In this document: piece by piece, positions 177 to 18,351 of the stretch | Layout: each line of letters starts with the position of its first letter | Position numbering within the stretch: position 1 is the stretch's first letter | NCBI GenBank assembly: GCA_000388065.2 | Contig: KB932215.1 | Reading direction: 5' to 3' (one strand) | Length of the DNA stretch: 18,351 nucleotides | From: Fonticula alba ATCC 38817 | Lineage: Eukaryota; Protista; Nucleariida | Program-made: the position numbers and the translations under genes | The notes under the pieces: model-generated | Databases searched by the model: none | What the model was told of the DNA's origin: nothing | Seen by the model: only the letters and a program-made list of their open reading frames with translations

Positions 177-1580
177 ATGAGCTGGTTCCGAGGATTCTCG
201 CCACGCCGGCAGCACACCGGCCAGCAGCAGCCACACTCGCCCACCGGTGGCTACACGCCGGTCAGCCCGACCGACCCGTATGGCGGGTATCCGCCGTCCG
301 CCTCGTCGGCCGGATCCTCGCACCACCCCCACCACCACCCGTACAGCGCGCCACCGAGCGCCTCGTACCACCCCTCGCAACCGCCGCCTCATCCCGGCTA
401 TCCCGGGCCCTACATGGGTGCCACCAGTAGCCACCCCACCTCGCCGACTCGGCCCGATGAGGCCTACTACGCCCCGTACACTGGGCACCAGCAGCGGCCG
501 GCGCCACCGGCCCGGTACCAGCCGGCCCCGGGGGATTACTACGATTACCCGGGCGAGTCGCCGGGCGGCGGGTATGGCGCGCCTGCGCCCGACGGGTATG
601 CCAACATCCCGCGCGCGCAGTACCAGGCCCCGCCCCCCCCGGCGGGGGCCGGCTATCCCACCGACGGCTACGGTCCCTACGAGGGGGCCTACGCCCCGCA
701 GCCCCATCCGCCGCAGCGCAAGTCCCGCAGCCAGCAGCAGCGGCAGCAGCAGCAGCAGCAGCAGCAGCAGCGTCCCGGCCGGACAGACATCCTGCCCGAG
801 TACTGCCCCTTCCCCCCGGCGCTGGGGAAGCTCTTCACCAAGATTCGCACCGATCTCGATCGGCTGGAGGAGGGTGCGCTGCTGTGCCGTGGGCCGGCGG
901 GGTTGTTTGGGGGGTTTTTTTTTCGGACGGGGGGAGGCGTTTCCTTTGGGGGCTCCTCAGCCGTCTCGGGCTTCTTCTTTTTTCTTTTTTTTGTGGCTGG
1001 TCGCCATGCACTAACCCTCCTCTTCTACCACCGACCGGGGCAGAAACCATGCGCTTCCGCTCGTACGTCGAGTCGCTGCCCGACCCGAAGTCCGCCCAGG
1101 CGGCCGACCTGGACGAGGCGGTCATCAACTCCGCCTACAAGGAGTACTTGCGTCTGTTTGAGCTGCCCCAGCGGCATCTGGCCGCCCTGGATGAGGTGGA
1201 TTTGCAGCAGGCCGGCGGCCTGGCCGAGGCCGCGCGCGCCGCCCGCCGCGAGCTGATCAAGTGCGCCCTGTGCCGTGCTGGGGCTTGGCGACCACTCTGC
1301 GCGGCGCTCGCGCCCGCCCCTGTGTGCTGACCCGAGCCTTCCTTTTGCTGTTCCCCCCCCCCCCTCCCGCCCGATCGCGCCGCCTCGCGCCATCTGTAGC
1401 TACTCCAACACCGTGCTGGATCATGTGGAGTCCCTGAAGCCGACCGTCTTCGAGCTTCGGCAGATTGTCCAATCGGCGTCCAATTCGCCGAACCCCACGC
1501 CGGCTGCCAACGGCCCGGCCTCGTCCTCCTCGCTCCAGGCGTCCGACGGCTCGTCCTCCTCTTCGGGGAGCGTCGACTGA
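177..1580 (+). CDS. BAG-domain protein (Hsp70 nucleotide-exchange co-chaperone) with a long Pro/Tyr/Gly-rich N-terminus; exons 177-873, 1044-1260, 1400-1580; 364 aa
   Basis: ATG at 177 (MSWFRGFSP). Donors GTGCGC at 874 and 1261, acceptors CAG 1041-1043 and TAG 1397-1399, branch-like CTAAC 1011-1015 and CTGAC 1327-1331; phases match (1 and 2). Spliced C-terminus LDRLEEETMRF...YKEYLRLFELPQRHLAALDEVDLQQAGGLAEAARAARRELINYSNTVLDHVESLK fits the BAG pattern (E-x3-hydrophobic, LD-x-V, R-x2-RR/K-x2-I, LD-x-V/L). Confidence 0.8.
732..770 (+). repeat. CAG trinucleotide repeat encoding QQQRQQQQQQQQQ in the BAG protein
   Basis: Read directly: (CAG)3 CGG (CAG)9 in frame with the ATG at 177. Confidence 0.9.
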
Positions 1581-1601
1581 GGCACGACCAATGCATGTTT
1601 C

Positions 1602-1610
<9 letters not shown>

Positions 1611-1634
<24 letters not shown>
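1611..1634. repeat. (TG)12 microsatellite just 3' of the BAG stop codon
   Basis: Read directly from the sequence. Confidence 0.9.
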
Positions 1635-2151
1635 CTTTCCCCCTCCCTCTGTCCTCTGACCCTCTTTCTTTCCCCTCCGACCGTCACCGCGCCCGCTCGA
1701 CCACCGCTGCGCACACCTGCAGAAACACGTCCTTGATCCTTCCCCCCGCCCCCTCTCCCTCTCCATGGCTGCCCCGAAATACATGCACATAGACGTCTTT
1801 GGCCCGCCCCTGCCAGCCCCAGGGGGAGGGGGAAAACACGCGCAAGGGCAGGGCCAGGGGAGGCGGGGATGTTAACATTGCGCGAGAGGTGGGTCTCGCG
1901 TGACGGAATGGCGAGGGAAGGGAGAGAGAGAACGAGAAAGAAAGAGAAAGAAAGAAAGAAAGAGAAAGAGAAAGAGAGAATAGGAAAGAGAGACGGCGCT
2001 GCATGCGCTTTATGTTGGGCTGCGAATGGAGACTTGTGTATTTGGTCAACCCCTGAAAAAAAAAAGAAAGGGGGACCGGGAGGGAAGACAAGACAAGAGA
2101 GAGAGAGAGAGAAAGGCACACACACGCGGGCACACGTGCGCCACCCCCTTC

Positions 2152-4187
2152 TCACTTCTGCTGCTTCATGGCATGCAGCTCCTTGATCTTGGCGGTGATG
2201 CTCTGGCGCGGGCGGTCCGGCAGGAAGGCCGCGATCTTGCCCCAGCGGTCGGCGTCGGTGGCCGGCACAGTGCGCAGGGCATGGACCAGGGTGTCGAGCT
2301 CGGCCGCGGACCAGGGGGTCTCGGTGGAGGCCGGGGCGGTGGTGTTCCGCATGTCGGCATCGGTCAGGTCCGAGCGCTGGGTCGGGGCATCGGCGATCTT
2401 GACCTCGCCCTGGCGGCGCTCAAACTGCAGGTCGGTCATGGTGACGGACCCGACGCCGCTCTCCATGGCCTTGGACTCGGCGACCACCTGCTTCTCGGTG
2501 AAGGTGGTGCTGCACTGGGTGTTGACGTGCTCGGTGATCTTGGTCCAGCGCTCGGTGGTGCCACCGGGGAAGGTCTTGATCGCATGGACCAGGACCTTGC
2601 GGTGGGCATCGGTCCACTCCGGGGCGGCGGCCGCGGCGGCGGTGGCGGTGGAAGCGGCGGCGGCGGCGGCCGCGGCCGCGGTGGCGGCATTGCGGCTGGC
2701 CTCGGCCGTGCCGAGAGTGGCGTCCAGGGCCGCGAAATAGAGGGCACCCTTGGCGGCGAAGTCCGACGCGGCCTCGATGGCGCGGTTAAGCTTCTCCAGG
2801 TCCATGACATCGTACTTCTCCAGGAAGAGCTCCAGGTTGATGGTGGCCTGCTGGTGGGCCTTGCTCAGGGGGGAGGCCTCCTCGCCGGAGAGGAAGCAGG
2901 CGTGATCGCGCATCAGGCCGCGCAGGGTCTTGCGCTCCTTCTTGGCGATCTTCTTGCGGTCCTCGCGGCCCTTGCGCTCGGCCTCGGCGGCGGCGGCGGC
3001 GGCGGCCTTCTGGGCAGCGGCCTCGGCGGCCTCGGCGGCGGCCTTCTCGGCGGCGGCCTTCTCGGCGGCGGCCTTCTGCGCGGCCAGGGCCCCGGCGGCA
3101 CCGGCGCGGCTCTGCTGGCGGCTGCGCTTCTGCTCCTCGCGGCGCTTCTTCTCCGCCTCGCGGAGGAGCTTCATCCGGGGGTCCAGGGCGGCGGCCTGGT
3201 CGACCAGGGTCCGGAGCCGGGCATTGTCCTTGGTCTTGGCCTCCTCGCGGGCGCGGCGGTTCTGCTGATCGGTCCAGCGCTTGTCATCGCGAGACCCGCC
3301 ATCGGACATGGTGCCCTCCTTGTCGCGCCAGTTGAACACGCGCCAGCTCTCGAAGGCATACCAGAACTCGTAGAAGGCCTGCACCTCGTCCAGGGGGGTG
3401 TCCATGTTGCCGAGGGCCGGGACCGGCTGGCGGACCGAGAAATGGGCATTGGCCGCGAACACCGGGCCGTAGACCTCGAAGAAGTCGGCCTTGGCCGGCA
3501 GGGTGGCCGCCGGCAGCCGCTCATTGAAGGTGGGGTCGCAGGAGTCGAAGTGCATGCGCAGGGTCGGGTCGACCAGCACATCCAGCGCGCGCTGGATGCA
3601 CTTGAAGAAGTTGTCACGCGTGTCGCCGGTCAGGGCCTGGGCCTGCTTGTCCGGGTGGTGGACCAGCACGCGGCGGCGGTGGGCCGTGCGGATGTCCGCC
3701 TCGGTGGCCGCCCGGCGCAGGTTCCCCAGACCCAGGATCTGGTACATGTCCAGGGTGCGGTACTCGGCCGGGTCGGCGGCCAGGAGGGCCTCCGGCACCG
3801 ACTCGTCGTACAGCTCGTCGAACCGCGGGTTCAGGCCGGCCATCTCGTCCTTGGCCGCGACCGCGGCCCCGGAGCCGTTGACCGCCTCGGCGATCGGGCA
3901 CCGGGTGGGGTGCACCAGACGCGAGATGTACCCGGCGCCGACGGGCTCGAAGGAGCGAGTGGCGGGGGCTGTGTCGGGGCGGGAATGAGTCAGTGGTCCA
4001 GGCAAGCAGGAGGGGGGGAAGGGGGGCAAGTGCGGGACACGGCCGAGCCGGGAGGGCAGGGGCCCGGGAAATGCGACGCACTCTCGAGGGTGCTGCTGAC
4101 CTGGTGGGTCTTGTCGGCGGCCCAGGACTCGGGCAGGGCCGGCAGCTTGACCTTGACGGAGGCAACCAGCGGGACGTAGTGGCTCAT
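2152..4187 (-). CDS. DNAJC2: DnaJ homolog subfamily C member 2 / zuotin / MPP11 (ribosome-associated complex J-protein); exons 4187-4082 and 3968-2152; 640 aa
   Basis: ATG at 4187; phase-1 intron 4081-3969 (GTGCGT...CTGAC...CAG) gives LPALPESW...TLETPATRSFEPVG (zuotin N-terminal EPVG motif). J domain DMYQILGL...HHPDK; zuotin homology domain FFEVYGPVF...FYEFWYAFESWRVF, SRDDKRWTDQQN; charged middle domain; two C-terminal SANT/Myb repeats (WTDAHRKVLVHAIKTFP...RWTKI; WSAAELDTLVHALRTVP...RWGKIA). Confidence 0.95.
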
Positions 4188-4366
4188 GACGACTGCTGGA
4201 ACCGGGAAGGAGGGGGGGGGGGAGGGCCTCGGGTTCGGGGGGGAGGAGGGGGAGGGAAAAAACTCGGGATTCAACAAGAAACCGAGTCCGGCGAACGAGG
4301 GGGCGAGGGAGGTTGAGAACGCTGGCTGGCGGCCGAATCGCCGCGTGCCGGCGCCTTTTATTTCAC

Positions 4367-4403
<37 letters not shown>

Positions 4404-4463
4404 CCCCTCCCCCCCCCCTCCCCTTTCCTCCCCGCCCCCCTCCCCCCTTTTCCCCCGATACCC
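4188..4463. promoter_or_regulatory. Probable bidirectional promoter / 5' UTR region between DNAJC2 (-) and LSM7 (+)
   Basis: Only 276 bp separate the two divergent ATGs. Contains one short AT-rich patch (TTTTATTT, about 4356-4363; AATAAAAG on -) and a C35 run at 4368-4402. Promoter function is inferred from gene geometry. Confidence 0.55.
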
Positions 4464-5398
4464 ATGTCTGTGCGTACCCGCCCGTCGGCCCGATACCCCC
4501 TCCCGCCGGACAACAGCCTTCCCACACTCTGACACCCGTGAAATGGGGCAAACGGAACACCCCCTCGCCCATGACGCACCCAGGGCGGCCCCCCTCGCAA
4601 TCAGAACCAGCCGGCCCGGCGCGGCGCCTCGGCCAACAGCGGCGTGTCTCGCGGCGGCCGTGGCGGCGGCCGGCCCGCTGGCGGCCGGACCCAGCACGAC
4701 GACGCCAAGGCCGCCAACGCGGCCAAGGGCCTGCGCGCGCGCCGCGACCCGGCCCTGGACCTGGCCACCATGCTCGGGAAAAAGATTCGCGTGTCCTTTG
4801 TCGGCGGCCGTGAGGGTGCGCGCCCCGGCCTCTCTTTGCGCCGGCCTTTTTCTTTTTTTTTCCTCCCCCGCCCATGTGGCCCCTGCCATGTGCCCCCCGC
4901 CACCCGTCCTAACTCTCCCCCTGTCTCTCTCTGTCCCCCCCTCCCCTGCGGCACCCCAGTCGTCGGTGTCCTCCGCAGCTACGATCCCCTGATGAACCTG
5001 GTCCTCGACGAGACCGTCGAGTACCTCCGCAGTACGGCCCTCCCTGTGCTCCGCACTGCGCCTGACCCGGCCCGGCTTCCTCACACCCCCTTTCCCCGGC
5101 TCCCCCTCCCCTCGCGCGCCCCTCGCCACCGGGGACACCCCGACACACAGACCCCTCCGACTCGACGCAGCTTCTCGTCGACATCCTGGACCCGGAGTCG
5201 ATGGCCACCATCGCCACCACCCGGCCCCTGGGCCTGGTGGTGGTCCGCACCTCGGCCATCGTGTCCGTCTCGCCGGACATGCTGGAGGCCATCGACAACC
5301 CGTTCGAGTCCTACGAGGAGATTGACGAGGAGACCGCCATGGCGGCCATCGGCGCCGCCTCCGGCTCCCCCTCCGCCGATGCCATGGTCGACGAGTAA
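4464..5398 (+). CDS. LSM7: U6 snRNA-associated Sm-like protein LSm7; exons 4464-4469, 4605-4815, 4960-5031, 5151-5398; about 178 aa
   Basis: Spliced product contains ALDLATMLGKKIRVSFVGGRE|VVGVLRSYDPLMNLVLDETVEYLR|NPSDSTQL...TRPLGLVVVR...LEAIDNPF, matching LSm7 (ILDL..Y.DK.IRVKF.GGRE..G.LKG.DPL.NLVLD; NPF tail). Donors at 4470, 4816, 5032; acceptors end 4604, 4959, 5150; phases match. The 6-nt first exon is less certain than the core. Confidence 0.92.
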
Positions 5399-7110
5399 GA
5401 GGCCTGGGGGTGTTTTTTTTTCTTTTTCCCCCGGCGCTCGGGCGCGCCCCGGTCACGCGCCGGCGCCCGGCGCCACATGTGAATATAGACCATCATGTGT
5501 ACCTCAGGTGAGACATTTTTCCTTTCCCGCCCTGGGTCGAAAGGGGAGAAGAGGGCAGGGGCACGGCGGCGGAGCCCTCGGGACGCTGTGGTCGCGCACG
5601 CGTTCCGGCCGCCACGCCCTCCGCGCACCGCCCGGGGGGGGGCCTACAGTGCGGGAATGCCCCCGGGAGGGCAGGTTGGCTCTTCCAAGGGACCGGGCGA
5701 CGGACGACGCGAGGCGGGCCAGACGACTGCCTAACACCAGGGCGGGAGTGAGGATGCCATTCCAGGCGGGACCCGCCGGTTGCCGCGCAAGCACGGGAGA
5801 CGGGGGAGCCGCACCGGGGGCAGCCCCCATCCCGGGGATGGCGCAAGGTCAGGGGGGGGGGGGGGGGGGGGGAGGGGGCCGGGGACGCACGCCGCTGACG
5901 GCCATTGCCGCCGCCCGGACCACGGAACGCCGAGTCGCCGAAAAGGGGCCTTTTTTAATGGGCCTGACCATTTGTGCCCCCGCCCCATCTTCCCCGATCG
6001 GGGGGGGAGGGGACCGAATACACGGGTCTGCCGGCCGAACATTGGCATCTGCCACTCGGGCAGGCATCCCAAACTGCGGGGCGCAGCTGGCGCGGCGGGG
6101 CGCAGGGGAGCGGGGCCGCAGGTCCCAGACCGCGCGAGGAGAAGGCCCGCGCCCACGGGCGACATGTTCCCTACCGGGGGGGGGGGGGACGCGCGCGCCC
6201 CCACGCCGGCGGGAGCAGGCGCACCTGACACCGGCCCTGGCGCGCTGCTCCCTTGCCTCCCCGTTGGCCTTCCACGCCGGTGCAAGTCATCCCAGCACGC
6301 CGGTCCCGGGGCTGGGCCGCGTCCGGCATGCCTTCCCCCCCCGGCCCGCACACGACACCCGTCCCTGGAGGAGCCGCCCCGGCGTCCCGACAAGGCTCCC
6401 TCCCTCCTCCGGGGGGCGCAAGGGCGGGGGGCCCCCGGGGGCGGCCGTGTTGCCGCCCGGCGGGAGGCCCCGAGGCAGGGCCCCAGGGGCCAGGGAGGCG
6501 GAAGCCGGATCACGCTCCGCGGCGTGGGACCCGCGCGCGCGCCAGGGCGCTTTTGCAGGCACCCTCGGCCCAGGCAGGGCGCGGGGAGCGCCTTGCGCCC
6601 GGGCGCGCGAGAGCCCGGCCAACCAGACGCCCGGCCACCGCCGCCGGCCGGGGGGGGGGGGCGGTTGTTTTGATCTCGCGCGGCCGGGAGCCGATCTTCG
6701 ACCGCCCAGCGCCCGCAGTCTGGCCGCCCTCCCTGCCTTCCTGGTCGCCCCCCCCCCCCGGGGGGGGGAGGGCATCAGATGGTAGAGAGGCAGAGGGCAC
6801 TGCGGGCGGGCTGGCGGGACAAAAAGGAGCCTCCTCCCCCCGGCCCATGCTACTTGGTCGCGCGGGGAGACCGGGGGGGGAGGGGCGAGGGCAGCTCGCC
6901 GGCCCTCCCCGTGGTCGCGGGCTTTTGACGCCCCTCCCCCGGGGCTCCCTGGTCCTCCCTGGCCCCAGGACATCTTCGCTCCCCTGTTTGCCCCCCCCCC
7001 CTCCTGCATCCTGTTTGCCCGTGTGCTCCCCGCCCCTTCTTTCTTCTTCTCTCCCCCTCCCCTCCCCCCCTCCCCCCGCGCTCGTACCCTCCTCTCGCTC
7101 GTGTGCCGGT

Positions 7111-7843
7111 ATGCCGCCCAGCACCGAGGGCCTGCCTGGCGATGCCGGCGGCCGCGACTCGCCGGATGCCCCGCCGGTCCCGCATCTTGGCGTGTCTCCC
7201 GGGAACCTGTTCACCACCCCGGCCGCCGGGTCGCTGTCCTCCTCCTGGCAGGAGTCTCCGGATATGCTGCTGGATTTGAACTTCGCCCCGAGCGCGGGGT
7301 CGCCATCGGGCACGGGCGCGGCTGGCATGCCGATTGCCGGGCCATCGTCGACGCCGGCGCCGGCGCCGGCGGCCGACCCCATCCCCTGGGCCGGCTACTC
7401 CTACCCGCAGGATGTGGCCAATCTGGACCGCGAGAGCCACGCCTCGTACTTCCCCCCGGCCGGCGGCGCCGGCCCGGAAAGCGACCCGGGGCCCCTTGGG
7501 CCCGAGTATGCGGACCAAGCCCCGACGGCCTACTCGTCGAGTGTGCGGGCCTCCCGCCGGCAGGGCCTCGGCGCCGGCCTGGCCGGGTCCGAGTCCTATC
7601 GCCGGGCCCCGAGCGCACAGACCCTGCAGCACCGGATCAAGGCACCCAACCTGTCCACCATCGACTGGACCTTCGAACTGACGCTGGAGCACCAGCGCAA
7701 GATCGACATCAAGAGCCGCGTACGAGCCGCTGGGCTCCTGCAAAGGGGGCTTCTTTTTTCCCTTTCAGCGCCTTGCCCTTGCCCGTCCGATGCCTTGGTC
7801 GTGCGCCCCCCTCCCCCGTCCGTGTCCTGTCACTGACATACAT

Positions 7844-7878
<35 letters not shown>

Positions 7879-10800
7879 CCCGACTCGCGCGCTCGCCTCC
7901 TCACAGTCCAGTAGCTTGCAGGCCACCCTGGCCAAAGGCTGGGACCAGGCCCAGGGATGGGTCATCGTCGGTGTCACCGGTACGTTGCCTGGCTCCGGGC
8001 CACCCCCCCCCCCCCCCGCCACCCAGGACCCTTCCCTTTTGCCTCGGCCATCTTGCTGGCTGACACTCTGCCCCGGGTTGGCTGCGCCCTCGCCCGCAGC
8101 CATCTCCTGTGCTCTGATCGCGGCCTTCCTCGCCGTGTCGACGGACTTCCTGTCGTCCCTGCGCATCGGCTACTGCAAGGGGGCCTGGCATCTGGGCGAG
8201 TCGCTGTGCTGCCTGAATCAGTGGCCCGCTCCTGGGGGGTCGTTCGATGGGACGTCCGCCGTGGCGCCCTTCTCGCTGGAGCCACAGATCGAGCTCCACT
8301 GCCCGGACTTCATCACCTGGGCCCAGTGGTCCGAGTCCTGGGCCGGGGGGTACCTCATGTACATGCTGATTTCCGTGTGCCTGGCCGTCTCATCGGCCAT
8401 CATCGTCAAGCGGGTGAGCCCCTTCTCGGCCGGGTCCGGCATCCCGGAGGTGAAGGTCATCCTGGGGGGCTTCGTCATGCACGGGTTCCTGGGCGCCTCG
8501 ACGGCCATCCTCAAGACCCTGACCCTGGCCCTGGCCATGGCTTCCGGCATGCTGGTCGGCAAGGAGGGCCCGCTGATCCATATCGCCGCGTCGCTGGGCA
8601 ACATCTGGCCGCGCTTCTTCCCCAAGTACCACGCCAGCGAGGTGAAGAAGCGCGAGCTCATCTCGTCGGCCGTGGCGGCCGGCGTGGCCGTGGCCTTCGG
8701 CGCGCCCCTCGGCGGGGTGCTCTTCTCCTTCGAGGAGTGTTCCTACTACTTCCCGAATTTGGTCATGCTGCGGACGATCTTCTGCGCGGTGGTCGGCGCT
8801 GCTGCCATCTGGGTGCGTCGGGCTTTGCTTCTTCTTTTCTCCCCCCCCCCCCCCCCCCTCGGCCCCCGGGGTTCTGCCCGCCCGTTCCGGGGTCCCCGGC
8901 ACCCGTCGCCCGGTCCTGTCCCATGTCGTCCCCCTTCGCCTCCCTTGCTCCCCTCCCGCTGACGCCTCCATCGCGCCCGCCGCCGCCGCCTCCTCCTCCC
9001 CCTGGCGCTCCCAGGTGATTGATCCCCTGCACACGGGCAAGCTCGTCATCTTCAGCTCGGCCACCGCCACCAACGCCACGGCCGGCTGGTTGCTGGTGGA
9101 GTTCATCCCGTTCGTCGGGCTGGGCCTCATTACCGGCGCCCTGGGGGCTCTGTTCATCAAGCTGCACATTGTCATCATGCGTGCCCGGCGCCTGCCGAAC
9201 TCCTTCACCAAGCGCTTCCCCGTGACGGAGATTTTCCTGCTGGCACTGCTGTCGGCCGCCATCCAGTACCACCTGGCCTACACGCGCATTGACATGCTCC
9301 GGCTGATGGGGTTCCTGTTTGGCGGTTGTGACCCGAATCAGGGCGGCTCAGACCCCCTGGGGCTATGCAAGTGCGTGTTTTTGGGGGCCTGGCCTGCCTC
9401 GCGTCGGTCCTTTTGTCCCCCCCCCCCCCCCCCCCCCCCTGCCCCCCCTACCCCATCTGCTGCTGACCCCCGATCCCTGTGGCGCCTCACTCCAGTCTCA
9501 ACAGCGTGGGCCCCATCATCGCCGGGTTGCTGGCCACGGCGGCCATCAAGTATTGCCTGTTTGTGCTGACGGCCGGCTCGCGCGTGCCGTCCGGCATGTT
9601 CGTGCCGACCATGCTCACCGGGGCCCTGATTGGGCGCGTTGTCGGCATCCTCATGTCCTCCTGGGCCCAGTGCGTGTCGCCCGAGGACGGCTTGGGTGCC
9701 TGCCCGTTCCTTTCTTCGCCCTCTGCTGGTGTCTGACTCCTGCCCCTTCTTTTTTCTCCGGTCGCATGTGTTTGCCTGCACATGGGTGTGCGTGTTGCGC
9801 AGTGCCATGCCGACCCTCTTCATTTGGAGCTCTTGCGCATCGGACCCCTCGACGTGCATCTCGCCCGGGTTGTATGCGGCGGCTGCGGCGGCCGGCTTCC
9901 TCACCGGGACGACGCGTATTACCAGTGCGTTTGTTCTCTCTCTTCCTCCCTCTCCGTCTCCTTTCCTCTCCATCTCCTTTCCTCTCCATCTCCTTTCCTC
10001 TCCGTCTCCTTTCCTCCCTCTCTTCCTCCCCCCATCCCTCTTCCTCCCTCCCTCCCTCCCTCTCTCCCTCCCCCTCTCTTTCTCTCTTTTCCTCCGCCCC
10101 CCTCTCACCCCGGCAAATCCGACCCACAGTCTCGGCCGCTGTCATCATCTTCGAGATTACCGGCGCCGTGAACTTCCTCCTGCCGACCATCGTCTGTGTC
10201 ATCGTGGCCAAGTGGACTGGCGATGCCATCCACCGTCTGGATGTGTGCGTTGGATGCTGCCCCCCTCTCCCCNNNNNNNNNNNNNNNNNNNNNNNNNNNN
10301 NNNNNNNNNNNNNNNNNNNNNNNNNNNNNNNNNNNNNNNNNNNNNNNNNNNNNNNNNNNNNNNNNNNNNNNNNNNNNNNNNNNNNNNNNNNNNNNNNNNN
10401 NNNNNNNNNNNNNNNNNNNNNNNNNNNNNNNNNNNNNNNNNNNNNNNNNNNNNNNNNNNNNNNNNNNNNNNNNNNNNNNNNNNNNNNNNNNNNNNNNNNN
10501 NNNNNNNNNNNNNNNNNNNNNNNNNNNNNNNNNNNNNNNNNNNNNNNNNNNNNNNNNNNNNNNNNNNNNNNNNNNNNNNNNNNNNNNNNNNNNNNNNNNN
10601 NNNNNNNNNNNNNNNNNNNNNNNNNNNNNNNNNNNNNNNNNNNNNNNNNNNNNNNNNNNNNNNNNNNNNNNNNNNNNNNNNNNNNNNNNNNNNNNNNNNN
10701 NNNNNNNNNNNNNNNNNNNNNNNNNNNNNNNNNNNNNNNNNNNNNNNNNNNNNNNNNNNNNNNNNNNNNNNNNNNNNNNNNNNNNNNNNNNNNNNNNNNN

Positions 10801-11208
10801 NNNNNNNNNNNNNNNNNNNNNNNNNNNNNNNNNNNNNNNNNNNNNNNNNNNNNNNNNNNNNNNNNNNNNNNNNNNNNCCATGGTGACATCGCTTGTTCCG
10901 CCTGCCCCTTGCTCGGCACCTTCTGCCCTGCTCTCTTCTCACCTGGCCTGCCCATTTGCCCATTCTCCGCCATCGGCCCGGCCCTCGCCGCGACCCGCTG
11001 CACTCCCCGTCGGCCTTGGCATCTCCAGTCTCCGGTCATTGTGTCGGACTCGCACCCGATGCTCAGTGTCATCGACATGTTCCGGCAGCTGGGCATCCGC
11101 GTGGTGCTGGTCCAGCGGGAGGGGTCGCTCGTGGGCATCATCAGCAAGAAGGATGTCGTGCGCCACATGCTGGAGGTGCAGCGCGCCCCGCGACAGGCTC
11201 CATCCTGA
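7111..11208 (+). CDS. CLCN3/4/5: CLC-3/4/5 (Gef1)-type endomembrane Cl-/H+ exchanger; exons 7111-7719, 7907-7979, 8100-8812, 9015-9370, 9496(or 9505)-9669, 9803-9924, 10130-10244, [exon(s) lost in gap], 11029-11208
   Basis: Motifs STIDW, GSGIPEVK (Cl-selective Ser), GKEGP (gating Glu), GGVLFSFEECSYYFP (proton Glu), PSGMFVP, CISPGLYA, TRIT-ISAAVIIFEITG, KWTGDA, and CBS2 SPVIVSDSHPMLSVIDMFRQLGIR...LVGIISKKDV. All visible junctions are GT-AG and phase-compatible. The helix R Tyr and CBS1 fall in the N gap and cannot be seen. Confidence 0.93.
7845..7876. repeat. (CA)16 microsatellite in CLC intron 1, between the branch-like CTGAC and the acceptor
   Basis: Read directly from the sequence. Confidence 0.9.
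9951..10014 (+). repeat. Four tandem copies of 16-nt TCTCCRTCTCCTTTCC within a long pyrimidine tract in CLC intron 6
   Basis: Units at 9951, 9967, 9983 and 9999, differing only at the A/G position. Confidence 0.85.
10273..10878. other. Assembly gap (606 N) inside the CLC gene
   Basis: Run of N. The flanking exons imply the missing helix R-CBS1 coding sequence lies here. Confidence 0.98.
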
Positions 11209-11441
11209 TGGCCGCGAAGTGGCGGCTCTGGTTGTCCTGTGCCAGTGCCGGCCCTCCCCCCTTCCCTCCCTCCCTCCACGCTCATCCAATACAAATGAAA
11301 TCCGCACGCGCCCAAGGGGGGGAGAGGGACTCGGAGAGCATGTATTCTCCTTGTTCTAACTGACAGGGGGGTTGGGGCCAAGACGCACACACACACACAG
11401 AGAGAGGGGGGGGGGGCAGCCGGGGGCAGCCGGGGGCCGCC

Positions 11442-14400
11442 TCAGAGGGCCTGCGCCAGGGCGTCGAACACCGGCCCGAAGAGCCCGAGCAAGTGCTGCT
11501 GCCCCAGCAGCGGGACATTCTCCGGGCTGCTGCGGGGCGTCCCGGCATGCAGAGCCTCGAGTGCCCGGATCAAGGACAGCAGCAGGGCGTGTGTCTGCCG
11601 CAGGAGGGCCAGGATGCCGGCCTCCAGCCGGGGCCCGGCGCTCGGGTCGACCGGGTCCAGCTGGGCCAGGTCCCGGGCCGCGCGGCGGGCACCCATCAGG
11701 CCGAGGCGCGCGCCGCACAGGACCACCGCGCCGGCCGCGAGCCGGGCCGTGGCGGCAAAGTCGGCGGGCGGAGCTGCGCCGATGGCAGTGCGGCGGAGCC
11801 GGGGGCGACAAGGGGAGTTAGGTGGGGACATGCGGCTTCCGGACACCCCTCTCGCTGGTGGCCGGGGGCGGGGCCGAAAAAAAGAAAAGAAGAAGAGCGT
11901 ACTGCGTCCAGCGGCGGCGCCCTGGGCCGCCGCATTGAAGCGCTCGATCGAAGCCGACAGCAGCTCCACCTCGGGAGGGAATTCCCCGGGGACGAGGGAC
12001 GAAAAGGCAAACAGCTGGTTTGGGGCAGACGGAGGCGCGGTCAGGAATCGACGGGTTGCTTATGGCGGTTGTGATGGCGGCCGTGGTGGAGATGGCCGAG
12101 AGGGCGGGCACGGCTGCGATGCTGGCCGGAAGGCGGGGGAGTGGCGGAAAAGGGGGGGCGCACAATCGGATTGACCAGGTGGGCGGTCTCCACCGGGGCT
12201 GGCGAGGGGCCGGGCTGCCCGAAAGCGGCCTCGGCGTGTCGGTGCTCCATTTCGGTGAAGTCCAGGTGGCTGGCCGCAAAGAGGTCGATGGCCTGGTTGG
12301 CGATGTCCATGGCCGCATGCGGCGCGATTGCCCCGCCGAGGAATTGCCAGAGCTCCGGGTCCTGAAGCGAACGGGCCATCTATGTGGCGGGTTTTTTTTT
12401 TTTTTGGCCGCGAGCATTTTGTTTGCCCGGACGCATGCGCGTGTTAGCACCGGAGGCGGTGAGCGGCAGAGGGGGAGGCGGTGAGCGGCAAAGGGGGAGG
12501 CAGTGAGCGGCAAAGGGGGAGGCGGTGAGCGGCAGAGGGGGAATCGCCACGCGGCCGCGCGCAGGAAGACAGTACCTGGTGGGTGAAGCGCCCATACCGA
12601 TGTGCAATGCTATCGGCGAAGGGCCCATTGTGGGAGGGGTCCTCGAAGAGCAGTGGTAGGCAGTCCCCATCGTCCTGGTGTTCGACGCCGAGTGCGGACG
12701 ACTCGTGGCGGGGCTCGTGCCCGGCCAAATGCCGGGCCAATCCGGTGGCCACGCCGTCCACCACGGAGCCGAGCCCGCGCGGGGCCAGCGCCCCGAGCAG
12801 GGGCACCGCCCCGAAGAGCCCCGGCCGGGAGTCCTCGGCCGGAGCGGCAGACATGAATCCCATGCCGGCCTGCGTGGATGGTGAGCGGTCAGCAGCGAGT
12901 TGAGGCGGGGAGGAGCATGCAGCATGGGATGGGCGAACCTGCAGGAAGGACCCGAGCTTGGACTCGATGACCGACAGAGGGTCCGGGTTGTCGCCTGGTG
13001 GAGGGCAGGCGGGGTCAGGCGGTGGCAGGGGGGTGGGGGCGGGGAGCGCATGGTTGTGCCGAGGCCAGAAGGAGACTCCTGGCCAGGGGAGAGGGGGTGT
13101 GTGGGTGGCACATGGCCAGGAGGAAAGACGGGAACACGTACTGGCGGCGGCCGAGTCGAAGAGCGCCGCAAAGCGAGGTGACCCGGCGGGCCCCGGCTCG
13201 AGACCCTCGTCCATGCCGAGGTCCAGGTCATCGTGATCGGACCAGCCCCCGGCATCAGGGCCGCCGGACGTCAGGGGCAGGCCGTCGTGGTCGGACCAGC
13301 CGCTCGGGGCAGGGGCCGTGCCGCCCCCGGCGACAGGGGCCCGACCATCCTGGCCGGAGGGGAGCAGGTCGTCGTGGTCGGACCAGCCGCCAGCCACGGT
13401 GGGCCGGGCAGCATCGGCCTCGGCGGTGGGGGGGGCTTCATCGCCGGAGGGGAGCAGGTCGTCGTGGTCGGACCAGCCGCCTGCCACGGTGGACCGGGCA
13501 GCATCGGCCTCGGCGGTGGGGGGGACTTCATCGCCGGAGGGGAGCAGAACATCATCGACGTCCCACCCGTCGCCGGAGGGATCGCCGCTTGACCGGTCGG
13601 CACCGGACCCGAAGCTGTCCACGCCGTAGCTGTCCACGCGGTCGGTGCTGGTGGCGTCGGCCTCCTGGCCGTCCAGGAGGGCGTCCAGGTCGTCCGGCAG
13701 CTCAGTGTCCCAGCCACCGGCCGACCCGACGGCCACTGGGTCGGTGGCCATCCGGGCCGGGGCCGGAGAAAGGGCCGCCCAGGGACTAGCAGGCAAGTTG
13801 GCTTGGAGATCAAGCCCGGGGAGAGGTGCACTTGGTGGCCCGGTGATGCCGGTGGCCGGATCTGTCGCGGGCTGTGTGTCCATGTCGCCCAGCAGATCAT
13901 CAAGAAGGAGGTCATCGGCATCCCCCCACCCGTCGCCCAGATCCGATGGAGTGGACCCGGCGGGGCCTGGGACCAGCGATGCACTGCCATCACTGCCTGG
14001 CACCGCATCATCACTGGTGGTCTGCCCGCTGGGCGACAGGGTTGCCAGGTGCTCGGCTTCCTCAGCTGCCAGGCGTTCGGCTTCCTCGGTGGCAATGCGG
14101 GCAGCCTCCGCAGCAGCAAGACGCTCGCGCTCTGCCTCCTCGGCAGCCAGACGCTCTGCCTCTTCTGCAGCCAGGCGCTCAGCCTCTTCTGCGGCAAGAC
14201 GTTTAGCCTTCTCAGCGGCAATACGGGCAGCCTCTTCCGCGGCAAGACGTTCGCGCTCTGCCTCTTCGGCAGCCAGACGCTCGGCCTCTTCGGCAGCAAG
14301 ACGTTCAGCTTCCTCGGCAGCAATGCGGGCAGCCTCTTCAGCNNNNNNNNNNNNNNNNNNNNNNNNNNNNNNNNNNNNNNNNNNNNNNNNNNNNNNNNNN

Positions 14401-17400
14401 NNNNNNNNNNNNNNNNNNNNNNNNNNNNNNNNNNNNNNNNNNNNNNNNNNNNNNNNNNNNNNNNNNNNNNNNNNNNNNNNNNNNNNNNNNNNNNNNNNNN
14501 NNNNNNNNNNNNNNNNNNNNNNNNNNNNNNNNNNNNNNNNNNNNNNNNNNNNNNNNNNNNNNNNNNNNNNNNNNNNNNNNNNNNNNNNNNNNNNNNNNNN
14601 NNNNNNNNNNNNNNNNNNNNNNNNNNNNNNNNNNNNNNNNNNNNNNNNNNNNNNNNNNNNNNNNNNNNNNNNNNNNNNNNNNNNNNNNNNNNNNNNNNNN
14701 NNNNNNNNNNNNNNNNNNNNNNNNNNNNNNNNNNNNNNNNNNCTCGGCGGCAATGCGGGCAGCCTCTTCAGCTGCCAGACGTTCGCGCTCGGCCTCCTCG
14801 GCAGCCAGACGCTCTGCCTCCTCGGCGGCAATACGCTTTGCTTCTTCAGCTGCCAGGCGCTCTGCCTCTTCGGCGGCCAGACGTTCGCGCTCGGCTTCCT
14901 CAGCGGCGATACGAGCAGCCTCCTCGGCGGCAAGACGTTCAGCCTCCTCAGCAGCCAAGCGTTCAGCCTTCTCGGCGGCAATGCGAGCAGTCTCTTCGGC
15001 AGCCAGTCGTGCTTCTTCAGCGGCAATGCGGGCAGCCTCCTCGGCGACCAGACGTTCGCGCTCTGCCTCCTCAGCGGCCAGGCGCTCGGCTTCCTCGGCG
15101 GCAATACGGGCAGCCTCCTCAGCAGCAAGACGCTCTGCCTCCTCCGCGGCAAGACGTTCACGCTCGGCCTCCTCGGCAGCAAGACGTTCGGCTTCCTCGG
15201 CAGCAAGGCGGGCAGCCTCTTCAGCAGCCAGGCGCTCTGCCTCCTCGGCAGCAAGACGCTCGGCCTCCTCGGCAGCAAGACGCTCGGCCTCCTCGGCAGC
15301 AAGGCGGGCAACCTCTTCAGCTGCCAGGCGCTCTGCCTCTTCAGCTGCGAGACGCTCGGCCTCCTTGGCAGCAAGACGCTCCGCCTCGGCGGCAGCAGCA
15401 ATGCGGGCAGCCTCCTCAGCAGCGAAACGTTCAGCCTCAACAGCGGCAAGACGTTCGCGCTCAGCCTCTTCAGCAGCAAGACGCTCAGCCTCCTCGGCGG
15501 CGATACGAGCAGCCTCCTCGGCGGCAAGACGTGCTTCTTCAGCGGCCAGGCGCTCGGCTTCCTTGACAGCAGTGCGGGCGGCCTCTTCAGCGGCCAGACG
15601 TTCGCGCTCGGCCTCCTCAGTTGCNNNNNNNNNNCGTGCTTCTTCAGCGGCCAGGCGCTCGGCTTCCTTGACAGCAGTGCGGGCGGCCTCTTCAGCGGCC
15701 AGACGTTCGCGCTCGGCCTCCTCAGTTGCGAGACGCTCTGCCTCGACAGCGGCAATGCGGGCAGCCTCCTCAGCAGCCAAACGTTCAGCCTCCTCAGCGG
15801 CAAGACGTTCAACCTCCTCGGCAGCAATACGCTCTGCCTCCTCGGCGGCGATACGGGCAATCTCTTCGGCAGCCAGTCGTGCTTCTTCAGCGGCCAGGCG
15901 CTCGGCTTCCTTGGCAGCAATGCGGGCAGCCTCTTCAGCGGCCAGATGTTCGCGCTCGGCCTCCTCAGCTGCGAGACGTTCGGCTTCCTCGGCGGCAATG
16001 CGGGCAGCCTCTTCAGAGGCCAGACGTTCGCGCTCGGCCTCCTCGGCGACCAGGCGCTCACGCTCGGCTTCCTCAGCTGCGAGACGCTCCGCCTCCTCAG
16101 CTGCGAGACGCTCCGCTTCTTCAGCAGCAAGACGCTCTGCCTCCTCAGCGGCAAGACGTTCTTTTTCCGCCTGCTCGGATGCCTGTGGCTCGGCCGGCCC
16201 ATCGGCAGGGCGTTCCGATTGCATGGTGGCCAGATGGGTGCCCCCCTCGGCGGCCAGACACCGATCCCGCTCCAGCTCATCCTCACCCCTGTCATGGGGG
16301 GTCGCCGCATGGGGAGACTCGGCATCGCCGTCCAGGTCCAGGTCCGACAAAGTGATGTCACCCTCCCACCCGTCAATTGCCTGGAGGGGCGGCGACGTCG
16401 GCATGCCGGTCCGCACTGGGGCGGGGCTGGTGGCGCCGGCAGGGACCGGACTGCCCGCCGGGGAGGGCGCAAGGCTGGCAGGCCCGCCCGGCGCCGGGCT
16501 TGAGGATGAGCCCCAGGCAAGCGCCCCGGAGGTGCCCACAGCCCCGGGCCCATCGTCCAGGTCCAAATCCAGGTCATCGCTGATGTCCCAGCCGCCGTCC
16601 GCGGGCGGGGGCAGTCGGATGGAGGCCGAGCTTGCGGACTGGGCCTTGGGCCGAGGGCCAGGACCCGGCTCCGGGTCGGTGCCCCAGGCATCGGCATCCG
16701 CCAGCCAGTCGTCGCCGGCGTCCCAGCCGGGCGCGGGGCCGGCCGCATCGATCGCCAGGGGGGATGGCAGGGCGGCCCGAGCATCGGCCCCGGGGGAATG
16801 GGGTGTCCGGGCCGGAGTCCGGCCACCAAGCCAGGACGCATGGCCAGGCGCCTGGTCGCTGGCAGGAAGGGCGTCAGGCGCCTGTGTCAGAGGGGGGTGG
16901 CCGGCGCGCGAGCCGGGCCCGGGCTCGGCCGCGAGGCCGTCCAGCAGCCGATGCAGGCGCGGGTCGGCCTCGTGCGGGGGACCGGCCGGCCGGGTATCCT
17001 CCCCGGCCGGGGGTTCCCCCTCAAGGGCGTGGTACGCCAGGTCCAGGGTCTCATTGATGGTGCGTCCTGGACGGGGCGAAGGTGCGAAGGGGACAGGGGT
17101 GCGGGGGTGCGGGGGGGGGGGTGAGTATGGAGTCTGACAACAGTGACCAGTGGGGAGGGAGGGTGGCCACGCACCGAGGCTGCCAGCGAGGGCCGAGCCA
17201 TCGGACAGGAGCTGCGACTGAATGCCCGACAGGAGGGTGGTGCCCCAGCTGAACATGCTGCGGCCGCCCTGCTGCTTGGACTCGGGCGCGGGGTGTGCGC
17301 CGGGGGGAGCTGCCGCCGGGGGGTGGGTGCCCGGGTGGGCCTGGCCGCGAGGGCCATCGGGGGGCTGCCAGTGGGCATGCGCCCCGGGCGGCGCACCCTG

Positions 17401-18246
17401 CGACCGGTGCTGATGCCGGTGCTCGGGCGTGGGGGTGAGCTCACTGGGGGGCTGGTGCTCGGGCGCGGGCAGGGAGGCGGCCAGGGGCCCGGACTGGCAC
17501 TCGGACGTGGATTGCGACTGGGGCTCGGGCCAGAGGGCAGGCCCGGGCACGGGCTCGGGCACGGGCTCGGGCACAGGCTCGGGTGCTGGCGCCGGGTCGA
17601 GGATGGCCGGCGGGGCCGGCTCATGGACCGCCTCGGGTGCGGGCCATGGCTCGGCGGCGGGAGGCAGGCCGGCAGTGGTGGGCACTGTTGGATCGGGCCC
17701 CGGGTCCGAGTCCGGCGGCGAAAGGACATCGGAGAAGTCCCCATCATCGAATGCCTCCCATGCGGCGGTGGCGGCCGCGGCGGCCGCGGCGGCCTGCCGG
17801 TGCCGGGCCTCGCGCTGGGCCGTGGCCAGCGCCACCCACAGATCCCCGGGGTCGGAGGCCCCGGCCGAGGGGAGGCGCTCCGGCACCGGGAGCGCGGCGT
17901 CCCCGAGGAAGCCACTCAGGGTGGCGAGGGCCTCGGAGGACAGGCCGAGCGCCGGGGCGTCGACCAGCCGGGCCGCCGGGGCCAGGGTCGATGAATCTGA
18001 CCCGGGCAGGGAGGACGAGGAGTCCGACCCGGAGGACCCGGCGCTCGACGAGACGGCGGCACGGCCGTGGAGCAGGCGCAGCAGGCGCCGGGGCAGTCGC
18101 CGAGCCGGGCCCGACCCCCCGACATCCGGCACACACAGGTCGCTGTCGGACAGCTCGCCCTCGGAGGCGGTGACGAAGTCCCCCTCGTCATCGCTGCTGG
18201 CCGGGAGGGGCGGGCCCGGCGGCGGGGGCCCATCGGGCGACAGCAT
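11442..18246 (-). CDS. Large uncharacterised protein (~2000 aa nominal): disordered Pro/acidic N-terminus, E/A/R repeat rod, acidic GW-motif region, C-terminal helical region; exons 18246-17175, 17066-13142 (contains two gaps), 12994-12939, 12869-12576, 12379-12164, 12014-11903, 11773-11442
   Basis: ATG at 18246. Six introns (17174-17067, 13141-12995, 12938-12870, 12575-12380, 12163-12015, 11902-11774), each GT-AG with a CT(A/G/C)AC branch-like motif and matching phases (1,1,0,0,0,1). These join the ORF-track fragments 14338..18246, 12444..16841, 12041..12379 and 11442..11969 into one gene. Stop TGA at 11444-11442. No family confidently recognised. Confidence 0.8.
12452..12539. repeat. Intronic minisatellite: four tandem 22-nt units GGAGGC(G/A)GTGAGCGGCA(G/A)AGGG
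   Basis: Units start at 12452, 12474, 12496 and 12518, inside intron 12575-12380 of the large gene. Confidence 0.9.
13354..13547 (-). repeat. Coding 90-bp (30-aa) tandem duplication LLPSGDE(V/A)[10 protein letters not shown](S/P)[11 protein letters not shown], about 2.1 copies
   Basis: 13361-13450 and 13451-13540 are near-identical, differing at only a few positions. Confidence 0.9.
14343..14742. other. Assembly gap (400 N) in the repeat rod
   Basis: Run of N. The same repeat continues on both sides in different nominal frames because 400 is not a multiple of 3. Confidence 0.98.
15625..15634. other. 10-N gap flanked by an exact 95-nt duplication (15530-15624 = 15635-15729); probable unmerged contig overlap
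   Basis: The two flanks are identical base for base; collapsing them removes 105 nt and keeps the frame. Confidence 0.8.
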
Positions 18247-18351
18247 GATTAGGCCAGCGCGCGGGCCGGGCGCCGAGGTGGGGCGAGGTGGGGCAGGGCG
18301 GAGGGCAAGGTCCGGGAGGGGGGGGGGGGGGGGGGGGGAGAAAGGGAGGTG

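Follow-up and report, generated by a model that had tools for sequence, protein, structure and literature searches.

The 18,351-nucleotide (nt) stretch of Fonticula alba ATCC 38817 analysed here (contig KB932215.1 of assembly GCA_000388065.2; referred to below as the window) carries several genes with short introns whose 5' splice sites, or donors, have C at intron position +4 and follow the pattern GT(G/A)CG(T/C). This pattern is a property of the whole genome and not of the window. It very probably represents a dialect, used throughout the genome, of the major (U2-type) 5' splice site, GU(G/A)CG(U/C), that is read by a U1 small nuclear RNA (snRNA) with ACGUACCU in place of ACUUACCU. U1 position 5 normally pairs with intron +4. 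In both U1 genes of F. alba this position is G (ACGUAC versus ACUUAC of other eukaryotes), a single U to G change that puts G5 opposite +4 C. The first-pass annotation of the window had anticipated such a compensatory change when it proposed a U1 5' end like ACGYAC.

U1 genes of F. alba

When the 31.3-Mb genome was searched with the Rfam U1 model (RF00003), two loci were obtained, C4:2020014-2020171 (+) and C1:17298-17456 (-), both of which aligned over the full model (1-166). Both genes start with UAACGUACCU, where the family consensus reads AUACUUACCU. The 5' splice-site recognition sequence ACUUACCU was found in neither copy, as both have ACGUACCU. The expected U1 architecture was present, with stem-loop 1 loops GAUCAACAAGG and GAUCACGAAGG, the stem-loop 2 loop AUAGCAC, the Sm site AUAUUUUUG(G/U) and a terminal hairpin. 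The first 13 nt of the two copies are identical, and 21 of the 47 predicted pairs were changed on both sides between them with pairing kept. The element TCTGAGGGC was located at -90/-91 of both U1 genes and also at -90 of one U5 gene (L001:1411-1419, L002 minus strand, L032, L003), while one U6 gene had TCTGAGGGG at -80 and TATATAA near -30; TCTGAGGGC/TCTGAGGGG is a candidate snRNA proximal sequence element of F. alba. The U2 genes share a different element, of the AATGG(C/T)(A/G)TT.. type, at a similar distance. Judged from the sequence of their loops and Sm site, the compensated pairs and the shared upstream element, both loci are genuine U1 genes.

No canonical U1 was detected in the genome with the Rfam model, by pattern search or with a covariance model based on both copies, and the latter model gave no third U1 copy. 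The canonical pattern ACTTACCT...GATCANNAAGG had 0 sites in the genome; the variant pattern ACGTACCT...GATCANNAAGG matched exactly the two U1 loci. A metagenome scan for the variant pattern gave at least 120 matches, which were pattern-only and mostly on bacterial-type contigs. Those listed look like chance, and none of them had an Sm site or a U1-profile match beyond the pattern; this outcome does not argue that such U1 genes are absent from the metagenomes. Two of the listed matches come from human-gut metagenome assemblies (L093, L133) and are not regarded as human DNA.

Donor pattern in an independent 200-kb block

An independent sample of donors was taken from one 200-kb block of another contig (C4:1000001-1200000) using a motif-blind caller, which ignores positions +3 to +8 and takes as input GT..AG, the reading frame and codon log-odds values learned from the F. 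alba genome. The calls were also refined with a learned matrix. Bases at +4 were as follows.

All motif-blind calls, n=125: C 80 (64%), T 22, G 14, A 9
Motif-blind calls with a margin of at least 2 bits, n=62: C 47 (76%), T 6, G 6, A 3
Calls refined with the learned matrix, n=127: C 101 (80%), T 19, G 6, A 1

By far the commonest motif-blind hexamer was GTGCGT (30/125), and no GTAAGT or GTGAGT donor was found among the 125 motif-blind calls. In the refined set the leading hexamers were GTGCGT (43), GTGCGC (13), GTACGT (10), GTATGT (6) and GTACGC (6). At +6, U was found in 65% of donors and C in 27%. The near-fixation of +4 C suggested by the first-pass annotation therefore holds as a strong preference and not as fixation, since the genome-wide sample has about 80% C and 15% T. 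Neither a +4 C frequency at the level predicted by composition nor abundant GTRAG donors, which together would have spoken against a distinct donor code, were seen in the block.

Base composition might account for these figures if +4 C mirrored the C-rich introns of a 70% GC genome at a weakly constrained position, with the U1 change being incidental. The genome is indeed about 70% GC (70.3%; PMC10752896), intron interiors contain 41% C (C 0.41, G 0.23, T 0.23, A 0.125), and +4 varies more between species than any other donor position (PMC10581693). However, +4 C reached 64-80% against the 41% expected (p 3e-7 to 2e-18). Moreover, G and C were equally frequent over all GT sites (0.32 and 0.32) and yet donors had G 6 to 17 times less often than C (p 6e-9 to 2e-23 for the asymmetry), and +4 A was depleted below composition. 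Relative to intron composition, C was used 1.9x, U 0.65x, G 0.2x and A 0.06x at +4, and this order (C > U > G > A) is what pairing to G predicts and not composition alone. The identical U1 change was, in addition, kept in two diverged paralogues. An origin from composition only is very improbable, and the asymmetry between C and G already largely refutes it.

Donors of the window

All 19 donor hexamers listed by the first-pass annotation were recovered at the positions and on the strands given there, and the recount again gave C at +4 in all 19 and G at +5 in 18 of them. If +4 merely followed intron composition (C = 0.41), 19/19 would be expected with p = 5e-8. None of the 19 window donors had +4 A, the GURAGU consensus was absent from them, and all 18 introns that can be closed within the window have GT..AG ends. 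None of the 19 hexamers fits the U12-type sequence [AG]TATCCTT, although minor snRNAs were not searched for.

Donor status was evaluated with tests that ignore +3 to +8, namely a public gene model and homologue spacing, the motif-blind caller, and domain continuity. The donors are listed below by gene or region; ClC refers to a ClC channel gene and P0001 to its public model.

874-879 (+), GTGCGC: BAG-domain gene, intron 1 (874-1043); exon 1 phase 1 joins the exon 2 frame; plausible
1261-1266 (+), GTGCGC: BAG-domain gene, intron 2 (1261-1399); caller top choice; lies within the BAG domain, after profile position 65
4076-4081 (-), GTGCGT: zuotin/DnaJC2-like gene, intron 1 (4081-3969); caller margin 6.2 bits; CTGAC at -25, then CAG
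4470-4475 (+), GTGCGT: LSm7-like gene, after a 2-codon first exon (ATG TCT); chosen by consensus only
4816-4821 (+), GTGCGC: LSm7-like gene, intron 4816-4959; found by the caller; next exon is LSM profile positions 22-43
5032-5037 (+), GTACGG: LSm7-like gene, intron 5032-5150, after the LSM exon; caller margin 3.8 bits
7720-7725 (+), GTACGA: ClC intron 1 (7720-7906); exact in P0001 and found by the caller
7980-7985 (+), GTACGT: ClC intron 2 (7980-8099); exact in P0001
8813-8818 (+), GTGCGT: ClC intron 3 (8813-9014); exact in P0001 and found by the caller; between Voltage_CLC segments 3-141 and 137-236
9371-9376 (+), GTGCGT: ClC intron 4 (9371-9495); homologue spacing
9670-9675 (+), GTGCGT: ClC intron 5 (9670-9802); exact in P0001
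9925-9930 (+), GTGCGT: ClC intron 6 (9925-10129); exact in P0001
10245-10250 (+), GTGCGT: proposed ClC donor, 28 nt before the gap 10273-10877
11897-11902 (-), GTACGC: intron 11902-11774 of an unnamed gene; caller margin 26 bits
12158-12163 (-), GTGCGC: intron 12163-11970; caller margin 2.1 bits
12570-12575 (-), GTACTG: intron 12575-12380; caller margin 3.8 bits; sole +5 exception
12933-12938 (-), GTTCGC: intron 12938-12870 (69 nt), in-frame and stop-free; CTGAC at -23 and a CAG acceptor only; plausible
13136-13141 (-), GTACGT: intron 13141-12995 (147 nt), in-frame and stop-free; CTGAC at -24 and a CAG acceptor only; plausible
17169-17174 (-), GTGCGT: intron 17174-17067; caller margin 5.3 bits

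Independent support was obtained for 14 of the 19 donors. Four are plausible only (874, 4470, 12938 and 13141), and 10245 would open an intron that enters a gap. The top choice of the motif-blind caller coincided with ten listed donors (1261, 4081, 4816, 5032, 7720, 8813, 11902, 12163, 12575 and 17174), and the donors of P0001 are identical to five (7720, 7980, 8813, 9670 and 9925). Domain continuity was seen at 8813 and 9371, which separate the collinear Voltage_CLC profile segments 3-141, 137-236 and 241-295. At 874 the caller favoured 889 by 0.8 bits only, with a shared acceptor. In exon 2 of the LSm7-like gene the LSM fold is not preceded by an in-frame ATG, and an upstream exon, here proposed to end just before 4470, is therefore required. 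The earlier statement that the donors were constrained by frame and phase fails for 13141 and 12938, where the in-frame, stop-free introns leave the splice signals only.

These results also bear on whether the pattern could be an artefact of the gene models, with GTRCG sites having been picked for their consensus looks, by the first reading as well as by the refined caller, and the real junctions lying elsewhere. By its own admission the first-pass annotation let the consensus guide about three donors; the four plausible ones stand without independent support, and P0001 has GTTTTT (9377) and GTGTGC (10243) in place of GTGCGT. Against this, a caller blind to the motif recovered ten donors exactly and elsewhere put GTGCGT first with neither GTAAGT nor GTGAGT, the non-chosen GT sites of the same search spaces showed no +4 C enrichment (C 0.35, G 0.29), and five donors agree exactly with P0001. 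Such an artefact is hardly credible as an explanation of the donor pattern.

Other splicing components

Two copies each of U2 (103.6 and 101.7 bits), U5 and U6 were found in the genome, all above the gathering score and with canonical elements (U2 GUAGUA, U5 loop 1 and U6 ACAGAGA). For the second U6 copy (C3:250747-250839; L004:1-1500), an assembly gap lies directly 5' and the 5' stem is truncated in the assembly. A METTL16-family gene was identified with PF05971 (47.8 bits in the genome search, 66.6 bits on the open reading frame); it has the NPPF motif, and its nearest solved relatives are human METTL16 and PsiM. SNRNP27K was identified with PF08648 (90.4 bits), and its RQYMNR aligns to the human residues containing M141. 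The first-pass annotation had offered an altered U6 or altered proofreading factors as alternatives to a U1 change. With the U6 ACAGAGA box canonical and both METTL16 and SNRNP27K Met141 kept, these alternatives are not needed.

In the METTL16-family gene (L027:1120-2625; C4:1095604-1098888, minus strand), a long in-frame poly-proline reading follows the NPPF/Rossmann part and is probably an intron with a poly-C tract. A conserved C-terminal RTARWAIAWS segment lies beyond it.

It is also conceivable that +4 is primarily read by something other than U1, either the U6/U5/Prp8 environment or a protein factor, and that U1 G5 is a secondary accommodation which adds affinity and does not set the code. 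A +4 C preference together with canonical U1 in two other lineages (Thecamonas and Micromonas) would fit such a reader. So would the retention of METTL16 and SNRNP27K Met141, elsewhere linked to +4 A, in a genome where +4 A is nearly absent, from which it would follow that the U6-side reading of +4 must differ somehow. However, the pairing sequences of U6, U5 and U2 are unchanged, the only change detected in the RNA machinery is at the base opposite +4, and the order C > U > G > A agrees with a G as the pairing partner. We consider a different primary reader unlikely.

Proposed recognition of the donors by U1

If U1 with G5 reads the +4 C donors, G5 would form a Watson-Crick pair with +4 C and a wobble with +4 U, and would be mismatched with A and G. 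The U at U1 position 6 would pair with +3 A and wobble with +3 G. The +5 G and +6 U would pair as usual, and later U6 recognition there would need no change; the later splicing steps would use unchanged U6 (ACAGAGA), U5 and U2. We infer that the G5:C+4 pair selects these donors. Functional U1 G5:+4 C pairing during splicing, of the type described for Mastigamoeba, is predicted from duplex energies only, which for the motif-blind donors were -7.0 kcal/mol with the G5 U1 versus -3.1 with canonical U1. As for the order of events, GC pressure would first have moved the weakly constrained +4 to C and U1 would then have followed; this order appears likely. Other GC-rich protists have +4 C with unchanged U1.

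Several points weigh against this reading. The donor junctions and the U1 RNAs are known here from DNA sequence alone, and the scores of the two U1 loci (64.1 and 57.4 bits) do not reach the gathering threshold of 69.5 bits. Only one 200-kb block stands for the genome as a whole, the calls contain noise, and the matrix behind the refined figures was itself derived from the data. Compensation between +3 A and +4 U was significant in the refined set only (p = 0.011, against p = 0.38 in the motif-blind set) and is given no weight here. The +6 C of 27% of donors is unpaired with U1 A3. Finally, since Thecamonas and Micromonas have +4 C with canonical U1, a U1 change is not necessary for +4 C and another reader of +4 may exist.

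Comparison with known systems

Suppressor U1 snRNAs engineered to carry compensatory changes at the 5' end were reportedly the subject of work by Zhuang and Weiner in 1986. As in F. alba, one base exchanged at the 5' end of U1 allows a changed donor to be paired again, but single sites in the laboratory were concerned there, whereas the change in F. alba is natural and fixed for the entire genome.

The closest natural parallel is Mastigamoeba balamuthi, in which a U1 with ACGUAC occurs together with donors of the sequence GUGCGC (Roy and Bowser, bioRxiv 10.1101/2022.06.08.495308). The same single U1 change, the Watson-Crick pair at +4 C, the wobble at +3 G, a frequent and unpaired +6 C and a GC-rich, intron-rich genome are common to both. 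Of the features that define this type, F. alba has U1 ACGUAC and, in the independent 200 kb, a preference for GUGCG(C/U) donors. In contrast to Mastigamoeba, F. alba has two diverged U1 paralogues with the change, and its +6 is mostly U (65%) and not C. Mastigamoeba belongs to Amoebozoa, another supergroup than the holomycotan Fonticula, and the change would be convergent.

Entamoeba has GUUUGU(U) donors with a co-evolved U1 (bioRxiv 10.1101/2022.06.08.495308), and likewise shows a lineage-wide shift in donor consensus to which the 5' end of its U1 corresponds. However, its bases differ from those of F. alba (+3 and +4 U), its pairing is extended and its genome is intron-poor. Thecamonas trahens and Micromonas (Mamiellales, GYGCGY) resemble F. 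alba in being GC-rich with a +4 C preference, but their U1 pairing sequence is the standard one and is unchanged (bioRxiv 10.1101/2022.06.08.495308). Among about 236 yeasts and outgroups, U1 ACUUACC and U6 ACAGA are invariant even where +4 has switched, and the +4 A-to-U switches of Saccharomycotina are linked to loss of METTL16, SNRNP27K or its Met141 (Parker et al., PMC10581693). The variation is concentrated at donor +4 in F. alba also. Unlike those yeasts, F. alba keeps METTL16, SNRNP27K and Met141, has a changed U1 and prefers C. Its genome is not of the type in which a +4 switch is linked to METTL16/SNRNP27K loss.

ClC gene model and assembly gaps

The public ClC model P0001 is a 781-residue protein identical to the window and was found by a search with the largest ClC exon. 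Rebuilding it by exon-by-exon translation gave the donors 7720, 7980, 8813, 9377, 9670, 9925 and 10243. The donor at 9371 (GTGCGT) and the 9377 of P0001 (GTTTTT) are 6 nt apart with equal phase. In 19 homologues exactly five residues follow the conserved GLC[DK], which fits 9371 and not 9377. Use of 9377 inserts two residues (CV) that the homologues lack.

At the gap 10273-10877, the homologues carry GIYDxHIxLxGYPFLD and the first CBS domain after GDA(F/I), about 200 residues that are missing here. The missing segment falls between the exon whose end is at 10242/10244 and the exon with a CBS domain that starts at 11029. The gap must therefore hide one or more exons, and the 786-nt intron that P0001 places across it is an artefact. 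Of the two donor candidates, 10243 (GTGTGC, +4 T), the one used by P0001, keeps the frame with the sole acceptor seen (11028), and 10245 does not. P0001 is probably mis-annotated, owing to the gap and to a donor model not tuned to the F. alba genome.

Two further gaps fall within a single long repeat exon rich in Ala and Glu, and none of the donors is touched by them. On the minus strand, the best reading frame changes from one side of the gap 14343-14742 to the other. The gap 15625-15634 (10 N) is flanked by an exact 95-nt duplicate (15530-15624 = 15635-15729) and looks like a typical unresolved repeat join, either an unmerged overlap or a collapsed repeat unit.

Genes and other features of the window

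The window has a GC content of about 70%. Its exons were searched against profiles one by one and not as joined spliced products, with the following result.

177-1580 (+): BAG-domain gene, by exon profile matches
2155-4189 (-): zuotin/DnaJC2-like gene, by exon profile matches
4464-5398 (+): LSm7-like gene, by exon profile matches
7111-11208 (+): ClC channel gene, by exon profile matches
11445-18246 (-): one or two unnamed low-complexity genes

The zuotin homologue (2155-3969, minus strand) has DnaJ, the zuotin homology domain, the RAC head domain and a C-terminal Myb/SANT of the DNAJC2/MIDA1 type. A Pfam search of the exons at 11445-18246 (minus strand, one or two genes) gave no family. A long tandem-repetitive region at about 13900-16150 encodes Ala/Glu/Arg/Leu-rich, coiled-coil-like repeats. 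By codon bias it looks coding in either orientation, with the block 14743-15618 as an example from the plus strand, and this measure alone therefore cannot assign the strand. Between the LSm7-like and ClC genes, the interval 5400-7100 (about 1.7 kb, 78% GC) contained no coding block in a codon-bias scan of both strands. Homopolymer C or G runs of 15 to 35 nt occur at 1-16, 4367-4402, 5856-5878 and 18320-18340, in intergenic or promoter-side positions, and many introns contain poly-C tracts.

Implications

The preprint of Roy and Bowser makes no mention of Fonticula (bioRxiv 10.1101/2022.06.08.495308), and no paper on the snRNAs, U1 or donor motifs of Fonticula was found in the literature library searched. 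F. alba is a second instance, and probably an independent one, of a rare and already described co-change of U1 and donors, not a first. We incline slightly towards the view that the U5-to-G change of U1 arose independently in Fonticula (Holomycota, sister to fungi) and Mastigamoeba (Amoebozoa), and that the U6 N6-methyladenosine (m6A) system has a role without +4 A. If so, this would be the first opisthokont case of the change and would be evidence for a repeatable path in GC-rich genomes, in which +4 drifts to C and U1 is then re-tuned. The retention of METTL16 and SNRNP27K Met141 with +4 A all but absent would likewise indicate a role of the U6 m6A system that is independent of +4 A.

Gene prediction tuned to GTRAGT donors will put splice sites in wrong places in the Fonticula genome, as exemplified in ClC by GTTTTT at 9377 versus the better-fitting GTGCGT at 9371. 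Few eukaryotic RNA sequences are as conserved as the 5' end of U1, and a second, phylogenetically distant ACGUAC/GUGCG genome suggests that donor code and reader can change in step with each other, probably repeatedly. F. alba may serve as a natural system for separating the share of donor choice set by U1 pairing from that set by later U6-side checks, and for studying the role of U6 m6A without +4 A.

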